A DNA stretch of 64,000 bases from Vicugna vicugna. Lineage: Eukaryota. Each line of letters begins with the position of its first letter. Position 1 is the first letter of the stretch. Of this stretch, positions 2,205-9,894 are shown in pieces. Below the pieces are notes generated by a model. The model had not been told where the DNA came from and ran no database searches. It saw only the letters and a program-made list of their open reading frames with translations. A program made the position numbers and the translations under genes. Location: contig MU059972.1 in assembly GCA_013265495.1 (NCBI GenBank), positions 327,915-391,914 on the forward strand, given 5' to 3'.

Positions 2205-2338
2205 GGAGCCCTCCCGGGTGTGCGGCTCAGCTGTAGCCCTGCGGGCCACCTTGGAGACGACGGGTGCCACGTTGCTGGGGCCGCAGAGCTGGACCCTGGG
2301 CAGGCTGTTCTGGTAGGCCTCCACCACACCCTGGATGC
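2205..2338 (-). pseudogene. CPNE7: CPNE7 exon 13, 134 nt
   Basis: [45 protein letters not shown]; AG/GT ends. Confidence 0.92.
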
Positions 2339-2401
2339 CTGTGGCGGGGGGAGGGTGAGCCTGGCCCCGCGGCACCCCCACCCGAGGCGCCCGCGTCCGA
2401 C

Positions 2402-2453
2402 CTTCACACTCGTCGTCCTTGGGGTTGAAGTTGACGGCAAAGTCATGGGACCC
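2402..2453 (-). pseudogene. CPNE7: CPNE7 exon 12, 52 nt
   Basis: [17 protein letters not shown](G); AG/GT ends. Confidence 0.9.
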
Positions 2454-2848
2454 CTGGGTGGGCACAGAAAGGACCTGTCAGCTGGCTCCCCCCCAGGAAC
2501 CCACACCCCTACCTGGTGGGAGAGGTAGGTTTGGAGCCCCTGGGGCCACCACGTGTGGAGGGAGTCACAGGACAGAGGTGGACAGACAGACCAGGGCTGG
2601 GCATCGCTCCAGCCCTGGAACCCGCAAGACCTGAAGCCAGTAAGTGCCCCCCACCACCAAGTTTTCTGTCTAAGCCAGTTGAATGTCCTTTCTAACTGGA
2701 AGATTCTGGGCTAATGTCCCCCGTTCTCCCGACAGGGCCAAAGGGCTGTCTTCGGTCATGAGAGCACTGGTGCTGGGATGTCACAGGTCAGCCCTCTGGT
2801 GGAGGGAGGGCCAGTGCCTGCACCTGCTTGTCACCCGCCACACAGCGC

Positions 2849-2903
2849 CCCATATTTGGGAGGGATCCGGGCTCCAAACCCCAGAGCAGGGAGCCTCTTG
2901 TCG
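2849..2903 (-). pseudogene. CPNE7: CPNE7 exon 11, 55 nt, GC donor
   Basis: ttccag|CGACAAG...; DKRLPALGFGARIPPKYG followed by GCGCTG rather than GT. Confidence 0.85.
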
Positions 2904-3269
2904 CTGGAAGAGAGGTGGTCTCGTCACCCAGGGTCTCTGATTACCCTGGTCGGTGGGGGGCACACTGGGGAGACACTGACAGAACAAGGAGATCAGGCTG
3001 ACACTTTTGGGGGCCCCAGGCCCCACCCCAAACTACATGGGGGAACTGAGGTACAAAGCCACGAAGAAGCCGCCCAGCACACAGGCAGGCAGGGGAGGAC
3101 CTTGGCCCCCTTCACCCACAAGGAGCCTCAGTTTATCATCTGTGAAGTGGGACTCGTGTCCTTCCGTGTCTGTGTGAAGGACAAAAGAGGCCATGTGGGT
3201 GGGGGTGGCCCTGCCTTGGTCCCTGGGGCTGCTGCAGGCAGAGCCTGGGGAGCAGGGAGGTTGGCGCAC

Positions 3270-3403
3270 CTGTCATAGTCCTGGCAGATCTCGCCCACAG
3301 CCACCAGGGCCTGCAGGTACTCATTGGGCTGGAAGGGGTTGATGTAGTGCAGGGAGAAGCTGTTCCGAGGGTCTCCGTTGGAGGCGATGAAGTCAACGGC
3401 CAC
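3270..3403 (-). pseudogene. CPNE7: CPNE7 exon 10, 134 nt
   Basis: [44 protein letters not shown]; AG/GT ends. Confidence 0.93.
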
Positions 3404-4060
3404 CTGCAGAGGTTCCAGGTGATGAGCCGGGAGCCCCTCCCACCGGGGCTGGGATGGGCACCTGCAGCCACCTCTAACAGGTCAGGGAGGGAAACCGAGG
3501 CTTGGAAAGAGGCTCAGCTGCGAGGAAGGCTGGTGGTGAGCCCCAGGGCCCGGCTCTGTGCAGGGCAGGACCAGAGGGGAACAGACCTCCTAGCTGACGT
3601 GCCAACCCCAAGGCTCCTGGCTCCCCAGAGGAAGCCAGCGCACCTCTGTAGGCCCGCAGAGAGCCGGGGAGGTCACCCTGGACCTCCCGCAGAGTTCTGG
3701 CCCTGCCCATAGCCTGACCAGTGGGGGCGAGGCACAGGGAGGGGCCCAGAGGCGGGACCAGGCAGGTCTTCTCAGCCACCACCCTCCCAGTGCAGGACCT
3801 GGGAGGAGCAAGCCTGAGCTGGGGTCCCCTTGAAGCACCCCAAGTCACTTTCCTCCGGCCTGGAGCACGAAGGCCATACAGAAGGGCCTCACTGTACCCA
3901 CGTCCCTGCGCATGTCCACACCAGGGTGCTGAGCTGGGCCCTGTGTTACGTTCAGAGTGGGGAGGGCCGTCGGGAGGCCTGGGGCGGCGCCCAGGTGCTG
4001 ACCCCCCCATCCCACTGGGATGTACTCCAGCTGGCTGCGTGGAGGGGTCAGTGGATTCAC

Positions 4061-4120
4061 CGTGAAGTGGATCTGACAGCCACCCATGATGTAGTCCAGC
4101 GAAGAGCAGACCCTGAAGAA
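4061..4120 (-). pseudogene. CPNE7: CPNE7 exon 9, 60 nt
   Basis: gaag|TTCTTC...TTCACG|gtgaat; FFRVCSSLDYIMGGCQIHFT. Confidence 0.9.
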
Positions 4121-6818: not shown

Positions 6819-7204
6819 AGAAGAAATGCCATATTTCCCTTTTTAAATCTCCACTTCTTCCTGGAGGGGAAAATTATCTTTCACTAACTTCATCTTAACA
6901 TCATTCAAAAAAAAATCAATTTTCATCAATAGACTATACTGGAATGGTTTCCAGAGCGGATGTTAATTAAAGCTGTCACATAAACAGAGTCACATCTTCT
7001 CTGAACAAGTCTTATTTCATGCTGGACATGCATATTTCCATGTGTGTCCCTGTATGTGGTCCCCGTCTTCCATGCTCACGAGGGCAGCTGGGGGCCAGGC
7101 TGGGCGGACCGCCGCCCTGTGCAGGGTTGTGCCCTGCGTGGGTCTTGGTCTTTTTATCTGACAGAAGGCTCTACCCGCCCATCTCCAACCCAGGCAGCAG
7201 CATG

Positions 7205-7468
7205 GATGAGTCACCCAGACATCATGTTGGGTAAAAGAAATCAGACACAAATGAGAACATCCCATGAGATTCACGGACATGAAATTCTAGGACAGGCAGA
7301 GCTATCAGGGCGGGGGGTGTGCTGAGAGGAGCAGGGGAACCTGCAGGTGATGAGAATGTTCCGTGTAATCTGGGTGACAGTCAGGTGGACCACCGTCTAA
7401 GCTCATCAGTCTCAACCCTCAAGGTCTACACATTCTACTGTGTGTACATTACACCTCAATAAAAAGCA
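7205..7468 (+). mobile_element. L1M (L1MB/ME) 3' end fragment
   Basis: catcatgttgggtaaaagaaatcagacacaaa...tgaaattctaggacaggc...tacattacacctcaataaaaa. Confidence 0.65.
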
Positions 7469-8093
7469 GTGCCCTTGTAGCCCTCACAAGAATTTAACGT
7501 GGGACACACGGAGTGTTCAGCACAGAGGCTAGCGCTAAGTAGCCTGGCTGGTGGCGAGAGCAGGCACTCCTGTTACACTGATAATGGAGGAGCTGACGGA
7601 CGACTGGAGTGGAGGACACAGTGTCTCTCAGGTGGGAGCTGGACCAACAGGCCACGGGGAGAGACACGGGAAGGGCTCCCTTGTGTCATGGAAGTGAAGA
7701 AAGCAAGCTGCAGAACAGTGTATGCCATTTGGGTTTTCTAATACATGAATATAGGGAAAAGAGCACGCGTTCCTTGGCTCCAGTGAGAAGACGTCTCTGC
7801 AGAAGAATGTAATGTCCCTGGAGACAGAGCAGGAGGGAAGCCTTCCATGTGTGCCTGTCACACTTTCTGGATTTGGATCCATATTACCCAGCACAAAATT
7901 ACATATTTTTAAAAATAACCAAAAAGAGTTTTTTAAGAGAAGGAGCTGTGGAGACAGGCAGCGCTGGGGGTCATGCTGGTACACAGTCGGCATCTATTCA
8001 TTGTCCCCATGCCACCACTGCCATAGAGCGAGCCCTCAGGACCTGCCCAAGTGCCCATCCTGCCCCTGCCTTCCCAAGGGGATGGGCACTCAC

Positions 8094-8276
8094 CTGCCCC
8101 AAGGTGCACTCCACGCCCCCCAGGAAGTTGTCACCCCGACAGCTCAGGCTGCTGGGCCCGTGGGCGTCATAGACCTCAGAGCGCAGCTTCTGCACCTCCT
8201 CAAAGCAGTAGCCGAGCGTGAAGGCCTTGGAGAACACCAGGTCCAGGCTGCTCCGGACCACCTCGGTTCTGTCCAC
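8094..8276 (-). pseudogene. CPNE7: CPNE7 exon 2, 183 nt
   Basis: gcag|GTGGAC...GGGCAG|gtgagt; translates VDRTEVVRSSLDLVFSKAFTLGYCFEEVQKLRSEVYDAHGPSSLSCRGDNFLGGVECTLGQ. Confidence 0.92.
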
Positions 8277-8885
8277 CTGCCGGCAGCGCCGAGTGAGGCC
8301 CTCAGGGTCCCCTTCCCCTCCCATCTGCCCTCAGGTGGTCCTTGCTTCCAGACTGTGTTGTGGGAAGACCCCACTCCACAAGATGCTGCGAGGCTCCAGG
8401 CCGCCCCTCCCTCACTCCTCACTCCCCCGGCCGCCCACATCGCAGATGGGGAAACAGGCTCAGAAGGGGGAAGGGTGGGGCCCAAGGGCACCCCAAGTCA
8501 GGGACAGAGCGGATTGGAACCCTGGACAGTGAAACCAGAAGCAGGTATCTGTCTCTGGTGGTCCGGAGATGACAAGAGACCGTACAGAGTCACGGATCAG
8601 AAGGTCGCGGCGCTCCTGGCCTCCGAGCCCCTGGGCTCTTGGGCCCAGACGCGTCCCCCGCCCCCGCCCCACCCCGCGTGCCGCCACCCCGCCAGGGGGC
8701 GCCAGAGCGTGGGAGGGGCCCGCCGGCGGGGACAGCCTGGAGCCGCCGCGGGCTCGGGCCCCCGCTCCCCTGCTCACCAGCCCCTTCAGCCCCTGACCTC
8801 GGCTCGCGCCCCGATCTCCTGCTCTTTCGAGGTGAAGCCACGCGTCTCGCGTGAGATTTTGACCGAGAAAGCGCTTCGTCCGGCG

Positions 8886-8920
8886 CGGAGCGCCCGGAGC
8901 GCCCGGAGCGTCCGGAGCCG
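8886..8920 (+). repeat. 9-bp tandem repeat (CGGAGCGCC) x about 4
   Basis: cggagcgcc cggagcgcc cggagcgtc cggagccg read directly. Confidence 0.85.
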
Positions 8921-9712
8921 TCGCCGCGACCCGCCCGCGGGGAGGGCTGGGCCGGGCGGGGATGACGAGGGCAGCGGGCCCCGTGGAAGCCCCGCTCCTG
9001 CGCAGGCGCCCCGGGCACTCCCAGGACGAGAGGTTTGAAGGGGGGCCCCGCGGCGCAGAGGCCCGCCCGCCCAGAGCCGGGTCCCCAACCCTGGCCACGC
9101 GCCGAGGTCCCTGGGGACCCCGCCAGTCTTCAAGAACAGGAGAAGCGACAGGCTGGGGGGCCCTGCAGACGGGGCGTCCCAGTCTCGGAGATCAAGTCCT
9201 CGGCTCCCAGCGAGCTCCGGCCCGGGTCGGCCGTTCCCCTCCCGGCCCTCCCTGCTCCAGGTCCGGGCACCCCCGCCTTGCGAAGGAGGACCCGGCAGAA
9301 AAGCCGCGCTCCTGGTTGCCCCGCGGGCGGAGAGGGACCGGCGGCCCCAGTCCAACCCCTGCCCCTCCACTCCTTTCTGCCCCTTAGGCAGGCCTCCTGC
9401 GGCGCCTCTCTGGCCCCGGAGGCCCCCCCCAACCCTGGGTCGCACCCCCCACTCCAGCGCTCCTCTCTCTGCTTGGAGCTCCCTGTGCAGGTCCGCCTCC
9501 AGCCCACTCCGGACACCTCCACTGCCACAGCTCCTGGGCACGCACCCCTAGACCCGGTAACCCCACCCGTGATCCTGCGCTCAGCCCCAGCTCCGACGCC
9601 GCTGCCTTGGGCCCCATTAGCTTCCCACACCCACCTGGGTCTCTGCGTCCCCACTCGGCACCACCGTCCACCCCTAGGCCTCTTCCCTCTGCACCCCCGC
9701 CCTCGCCCCTAC

Positions 9713-9894
9713 CTGCACCCATTGGCTCTGCGACTGCAGCAGCAGCACCACGCTGGGGTCGGACTGTGAGCGGGTCGCGGGTCGCGGTCCAGCAGGTGCC
9801 GGCAGCTGAGCCGCAGCTCCACCTTCGAGGCGCAGGGCGCTGGTACCACCCCGTGGGCCGCTGCCGCCACTGCGCGCTCCGACCTCGCGCTCAT
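9713..9894 (-). pseudogene. CPNE7: CPNE7 exon 1 coding part, 182 nt, frameshifted
   Basis: ATG at 9894-9892 gives MSARSERAVAAAAHGVVPAPCASKVELRLSCRHLLDRDP, then the frame breaks. The shifted frame reads SDPSVVLLLQSQSQWVQ up to the donor CAG|GTAGGG. Confidence 0.9.

Follow-up and report, generated by a model that had tools for sequence, protein, structure and literature searches.

Shared and private lesions in vicuña and dromedary point to loss of the copine gene CPNE7 on the camelid stem

CPNE7 encodes copine-7, which contains two C2 domains followed by a vWA domain and binds phospholipids in a Ca2+-dependent manner. Analysis of a 64,000-nucleotide stretch of the vicuña (Vicugna vicugna) genome (GenBank assembly GCA_013265495.1, contig MU059972.1, positions 327,915 to 391,914; hereinafter, the window) shows that the CPNE7 gene, which neighbours RPL13 on the minus strand of this stretch and has its exons 1-13 at 9894-2205, is broken, and that several of its lesions recur in the dromedary, Camelus dromedarius. 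We put at roughly 94% the probability that the window gene is the syntenic orthologue of CPNE7, that it has been a unitary pseudogene since the camelid stem and that it is decaying neutrally. A sequence-only reading of the window had proposed just such a lineage-specific pseudogene, probably of camelids, and the proposal is upheld by conserved synteny, six shared lesions, intact outgroup genes, relaxed selection and the lack of a second copy in whole-assembly searches.

As the reference for gene structure, we used the cattle CPNE7 protein (P0159) spliced exactly onto cattle genomic DNA (L033), which gives 15 coding exons of 174, 183, 75, 75, 84, 90, 99, 87, 60, 134, 55, 52, 134, 237 and 111 nucleotides (nt), with AG/GT at every splice site. 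The coding sequences of deer, horse and macaque also map exactly to genomic DNA, with the lengths of exons 1-14 identical to those in cattle and exon 15 of either 111 or 138 nt among the four species; the structure of CPNE7 is strongly conserved among the intact orthologues. To check the lesions, we searched the window, extended by 8 kb upstream (L030, the sequence to which the coordinates of exons 14 and 15 refer), with the cattle exons by tblastn and blastn and then made three-way alignments. Six-frame translation of the region 2205-9894 yields copine-like peptides on the minus strand, and RPL13 exons are found at 16550-18448, on the same strand as CPNE7 and upstream of its exon 1. In the dromedary locus (L031, from assembly GCA_000803125.3), RPL13 and CPNE7 follow in the same order, and the two loci are colinear at approximately 94-95% identity; given that RPL13 lies upstream as it does in the dromedary, the window locus is the syntenic CPNE7 orthologue. 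The span 2205-9894 that the sequence-only reading had assigned to CPNE7 is indeed the locus but holds only exons 1-13; exons 14 and 15, which carry further lesions, lie outside it, 198-1128 bp before the window start.

Compared with CPNE7 of ruminants, horse and primates, the window gene is alike in its place by RPL13 and in 13 of the 15 exons that remain recognisable, with exon-by-exon protein identity to cattle CPNE7 of 69-94%, but differs in having no open frame, frameshifts in exons 1, 6, 8 and 15, two splice sites that are lost or weakened (both also in the camel), deletions that removed exons 3 and 4, a part of exon 6 and the exon-14 donor, and amino acid change at a neutral rate. Copine homology is retained despite the broken frame, with CPNE7 similarity throughout and matches of the Pfam Copine family (PF07002) to exons 10, 13 and 14.

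Six lesions are base-for-base identical in the independent dromedary assembly. Exon 1 (9713..9894, with the ATG at 9894-9892) is 182 nt long versus 174 nt in cattle, deer, horse and macaque; apart from an in-frame gain of 3 nt, it carries a net +5 frameshift around 9787-9762 that combines a 7-bp tandem duplication with a 2-bp deletion, leaving GACCGCGACCCGCGACCCGCTCACAGTCC in place of GACCGCGACCCGCTCACCAAGTCC. Exon 6, of which a remnant starting at 5039 is present (5003..5041 with the acceptor), has lost its acceptor by an AG to AC change (5041-5040) and has a 2-bp deletion between 5026 and 5025. Exon 8 (4454..4538; 85 nt versus 87) has a 2-bp deletion between 4498 and 4497, inside the KYKQKKRNYK motif; the camelid version reads KYKQRR up to the break and NYK after it. 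In exon 11 (2847..2903 including the donor, the exon itself being 2903-2849), the GT donor is replaced by GC (2848-2847) in a weak context (GGG followed by GCGCTG), and exon 15 (6981-6872 of L030) has a 1-bp deletion. The same six lesions in the assembly of another genus cannot be put down to assembly error, and the loss therefore predates the split between camels and llamas. The frameshift in exon 1, the AC acceptor of exon 6, the deletion in exon 8 and the GC donor of exon 11 had all been noticed in the window sequence, and the expectation that lesions would be shared across camelids holds in the dromedary for each of these; the 2-bp deletion in exon 6 and the 1-bp deletion in exon 15 come in addition.

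Beyond the shared set, each lineage carries four lesions of its own. In the window lineage, an 893-bp deletion with its junction between 5557 and 5556 (5550..5563, minus strand) took out everything from exon 3 to exon 4, intron 3 included, along with most of intron 4; it is measured against the camel, where positions 13505-14398 have no counterpart in the window, and intron-4 sequence now directly follows the exon-3 acceptor TTGCAG. This deletion accounts for exons 3 and 4 having been found unrecognisable, and the cattle exons used as queries give neither a protein nor a DNA match to them in the window locus. The truncation of exon 6, likewise noted before, is a 127-bp deletion that cut the exon between 5003 and 5002 and took its last 53 nt together with the donor. 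Exon 14 (7802-7578 of L030) has a 17-bp deletion of its end and donor, and the stop codon in exon 15 is changed from TGA to TGG. The dromedary retains exons 3, 4 and full-length exon 6, and the three large deletions are therefore private to the window lineage. The dromedary gene, for its part, has lost the start codon (ATG to ACG) and gained premature stops in exons 5 (TAA), 7 (TAG) and 15 (TAG). Lesions that are partly shared and partly different between the two lineages imply a pseudogene inherited from their common ancestor.

The course of decay can be laid out on this basis. The common ancestor of camels and llamas had the +5 frameshift in exon 1, an exon 6 without its acceptor and short of 2 bp, an exon 8 likewise short of 2 bp, a GC donor behind exon 11 and a 1-bp deletion in exon 15. 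After the split, the window lineage went on to lose exons 3 and 4, the exon-14 donor, the last part of exon 6 and the stop codon, and the dromedary lineage lost the start codon and gained the three premature stops. When the recognisable exons of the window gene are spliced and translated from the ATG, the native frame is left after codon 38 and translation stops after 104 codons; in place of an open C2A-C2B-vWA frame, there is a broken one, from which 50 codons (exons 3 and 4) and half of exon 6 are missing. Judging from these sequences, copine-7 protein would not be made in camelids, and any residual CPNE7 transcript would be aberrantly spliced and probably degraded.

The gene appears to be single-copy. 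A six-frame search of the whole assembly with cattle CPNE7 detected no second CPNE7, only this locus and distinct paralogues, and no retrocopy-like contiguous multi-exon match, in line with the earlier expectation that an intact copy would not turn up elsewhere. Searches of the assembly with the Pfam Copine family and cattle CPNE7 recovered the CPNE7 locus and about 10 other copine loci. The best of these others lies on contig C6935, where the highly conserved exon 14 shares 79% identity with that of cattle CPNE7. We considered this locus as a second CPNE7 and rejected it in view of 61% identity in exon 2, 47% identity in exon 1 and a span of approximately 278 kb; although it is the copine locus closest to CPNE7, it lies on a different contig, has low identity in the first two exons and is a distinct paralogue, probably CPNE4, a name that we infer.

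To estimate selection on the remaining coding sequence, we compared window, dromedary, cattle, deer, horse and macaque CPNE7 over an alignment of 538 codons in which ambiguous and non-homologous stretches were masked; the stoat coding sequence was left out on account of an isoform difference. The ratio of nonsynonymous to synonymous rates (dN/dS) by the NG86 method is 0.49 for the window-camel pair, compared with 0.02 for cattle-deer and 0.09 for both cattle-horse and horse-macaque. A GY94-F3x4 branch model puts the corresponding ratio, omega, at 0.298 for the three camelid branches and at 0.038 for the background, and it improves on the one-ratio model by a 2*delta-lnL (twice the difference in log-likelihood) of 83.6; the stem and crown camelid values, approximately 0.28-0.32, are indistinguishable. 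Purifying selection on camelid CPNE7 is relaxed.

Because the crown-camelid omega is below 1 under GY94-F3x4, we calibrated neutrality empirically, using CpG-aware substitution frequencies from window-camel non-coding DNA of the same locus (about 20,000 site observations, with both directions of the alignment counted). Over the shared codons, the neutral expectation is 37.6 nonsynonymous, 14.1 synonymous and 1.0 nonsense differences, and the counts between window and camel are 40, 25 and 3, respectively. The ratio of observed to expected nonsynonymous differences is accordingly 1.06 (95% interval 0.74-1.41). Behind the low omega and the low ratio of nonsynonymous to synonymous differences (N/S) there is thus an excess of synonymous changes (25 versus 14 expected), nonsynonymous changes being in no deficit, and we reject the crown value of 0.30 as a sign of constraint. 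The synonymous excess is probably a model misfit of former coding sequence that is rich in G and C at third codon positions and out of equilibrium. The sequence-only reading had named a dN/dS near 1 as support for the loss; the nonsynonymous rate is neutral, but the camelid omega of 0.298 and the NG86 value are lower and the crown value is significantly so.

Several observations weigh against neutral decay of a single dead copy and should be set out together. The crown-camelid omega of 0.30 differs significantly from 1 (2*delta-lnL = 19 under GY94-F3x4); the observed N/S of 1.60 is below the intron-calibrated neutral value of 2.68 (binomial p = 0.05); and in exons 1-8, nonsynonymous differences amount to 0.56 of the expectation (10 versus 17.8, a small count). 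Exons 9-13 are free of indels: exon 9 (4061..4120, 60 nt), exon 10 (3270..3403, 134 nt, the start of the vWA/Copine domain), exon 11, exon 12 (2402..2453, 52 nt) and exon 13 (2205..2338, 134 nt, the last exon within the window). Formally, weak residual constraint on camelid CPNE7 is compatible with these figures. The assembly, moreover, is divided into 12,405 contigs, which, strictly speaking, leaves room for a copy in unassembled sequence.

Some of these points could be read as signs of a locus in which the full-length gene is dead but something else remains functional, the candidates being a protein of the vWA domain only, encoded by exons 9-14, a short peptide such as an annotated alpaca model, or a non-coding RNA. 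The exons without indels also keep their AG acceptors, the omega is lower than 1 (even if lowered by the synonymous excess), and there are signs of expression and annotation. In particular, the alpaca model XP_031528340.1 ('copine-7-like', 107 amino acids), which makes use of exon 2 of the C2A domain (8094..8276, minus strand; 183 nt, AG/GT sites, no indel, 13 of the 65 aligned residues unlike cattle), maps to 8324-8088 and 5824-5735 on the minus strand. It begins at an intronic ATG at 8324, in intron 1, runs through exon 2 and splices into a cryptic exon of intron 2 (5735..5824), and it equals the window at every residue except for one that spans the splice junction of the model. Several RNA runs contain 5-14% of the k-mers of the locus, among them four transcriptome runs labelled 'reproductive system metagenome' (X15, X16, X25 and X26) with 9-14%; some part of 2200-9900 is therefore transcribed.

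Other evidence speaks against such a function. In exons 9-15, which make up the vWA half, there are 30 nonsynonymous differences against 19.8 expected, that is, at or above the neutral rate, so that this half is not being conserved. Both genera have GC as the donor of exon 11, the exon-14 donor is deleted in the window lineage, and exon 15 has a premature stop in the dromedary. Conserved residues of the vWA domain have been replaced, with DFTAS changed to DFIAS in exon 10 of both camelids, and TDM to TNM and NAD to NAN in the window. The 107-residue model is not kept as an open reading frame in the camel, the gene models of which differ. A search with the exon-2 peptide returned two camelid entries, Vicugna pacos 'copine-7-like' and Camelus dromedarius 'Copine-7, partial' (94% identical), and the only camelid CPNE7 proteins found in a collection of 5.8 billion proteins are the 107-residue alpaca fragment and dromedary models, which read exon 8 in a shifted frame. 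The alpaca model hints at residual, aberrantly spliced transcription of a dead gene. We consider a surviving function of the locus quite improbable and retain the interpretation of CPNE7 as a neutrally decaying pseudogene.

Still less credible, to the point of being negligible, is the explanation that the lesions are assembly or sequencing errors and that the gene is intact. Such errors might be suspected in a fragmented assembly and in a region as rich in GC as this one (51-71% over 2205-9894), but they would not reproduce six lesions to the base in an assembly of a different genus, nor would they yield replacements at the neutral rate. There are no runs of N within the CPNE7 locus, and 14 DNA runs from 6 studies each contain 98% of the sampled 31-mers of 4400-9900. 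A recent loss confined to the llama and alpaca lineage, with a working gene in camels, could appeal to the largest lesions (exons 3-4, exon 6 and the exon-14 donor) being private to the window lineage but is refuted by the dromedary, with its six shared lesions, lost start codon and three stops of its own.

CPNE7 is annotated in numerous ruminants (Bos, Bubalus, Capra, Ovis, Cervus, Dama, Muntiacus, Rangifer and Odocoileus) as well as in equids, carnivores, primates and others; the loss is thus shown to be camelid-specific relative to ruminants and non-artiodactyls only. Omega on the stem equals that in the crown, and six lesions are shared as against four private ones per lineage; both point to an early release from constraint on the camelid stem, preceding the split by tens of millions of years, although the data are too few for a firm date. 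Among about 8.4 million papers and preprints, we found none that links CPNE7 to pseudogenes, gene loss, camels or cetaceans, and one on pig genetics that mentions CPNE7; lineage-specific gene losses are common and catalogued in bulk, and such catalogues may list the gene. That CPNE7 was lost this early on the stem and that its loss is also undescribed, taken together, we rate slightly above an even chance. Apart from its date, the camelid loss is solidly supported as a new lineage-specific unitary pseudogene, an event of an ordinary kind.

Camelids have dentin-bearing teeth and a normal nervous system. Unitary pseudogenes of mammals include GULO in primates and genes for enamel and dentin matrix proteins in toothless mammals, and camelid CPNE7 resembles them as a single-copy gene disabled in place, with shared and later lesions and relaxed selection; it has no obvious matching phenotype, however, and, unlike the tooth-gene losses of edentulous lineages, it comes with no loss of an organ that would explain it. 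Copine-7 is described as the clearest case of a copine in mammalian tissue development (PMC13733291). It is reported to be secreted by preameloblasts and to drive odontoblast differentiation and the formation of dentin tubules, entering dental pulp cells by way of nucleolin and inducing ciliogenesis genes and Dspp/Dmp1 (PMC13733291). Dentin-repair peptides derived from its KYKQKRRSYK motif are in development (PMC13733291), and one of the shared frameshifts hits the stretch of exon 8 (KYKQK.R.YK) from which they come.

Inasmuch as camelids with dentin-bearing teeth lack CPNE7, they represent a natural knockout, which argues that the gene is either dispensable or compensated. If an early stem loss is correct, all living camelids are natural CPNE7 knockouts that nevertheless form normal brains and normal tubular dentin; odontoblasts of a large mammal could then differentiate without copine-7, and the loss would bear on the mechanism proposed for the CPNE7-derived dentin-regeneration peptides. 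Camelids would also offer a comparative system for finding which paralogue or pathway substitutes for CPNE7; the CPNE4-like paralogue on contig C6935 might partly cover its role. With its shared and private lesions, camelid CPNE7 is, in addition, a case of pseudogene decay that could calibrate gene-loss pipelines in GC-rich regions.

Two further exons of the window gene appear undamaged in structure, both on the minus strand. Exon 5, the start of the C2B domain (5376..5459, 84 nt), is open with intact splice sites, with the conserved SKSDPF of C2B changed to SKPHPF, and exon 7 (4807..4905, 99 nt) is open and without indels, with AG/GT sites. In protein databases, 'dipeptidase 1' entries of Bos, Ovis and Hippopotamus are clustered with copine-7 at the 90% level. 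The hippopotamus entry was considered as hippopotamus CPNE7 and rejected, being plain DPEP1 with no CPNE7 similarity; the cluster is a database artefact, probably chained via CPNE7-DPEP1 read-through models.

The neighbouring RPL13 gene had been described as intact, and four of its five expected coding pieces are open by eye on the minus strand at 16550-18448, ending in ...AEQDVEKKK and a stop. Runs of N of 263 and 183 bases, either gaps in the assembly or masked sequence, occur in the window at 30711-30973 and 56632-56814, far from CPNE7. The window and camel loci also differ by a 120-bp intron-2 stretch present in the camel only (L031 12568-12688 versus window ~6367) and by approximately 227 bp downstream of exon 15 present in the window genome only (L030 ~5946-6173, equivalent to window positions -2054 to -1827). 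Intron 2 contains a GT/CA-rich low-complexity stretch at 6480-6620 (GTGTGTGTGTTT...CACACA) and, at 6700-6830, an element resembling a tRNA-derived short interspersed element (GGGGATTGAACCCAGGACC...GCTCTACCACTTGAGCTACACCC) with poly-T/TTTA-rich flanks; around the latter, the alignment with the dromedary is unbroken, and its insertion is therefore older than the split between camels and llamas.

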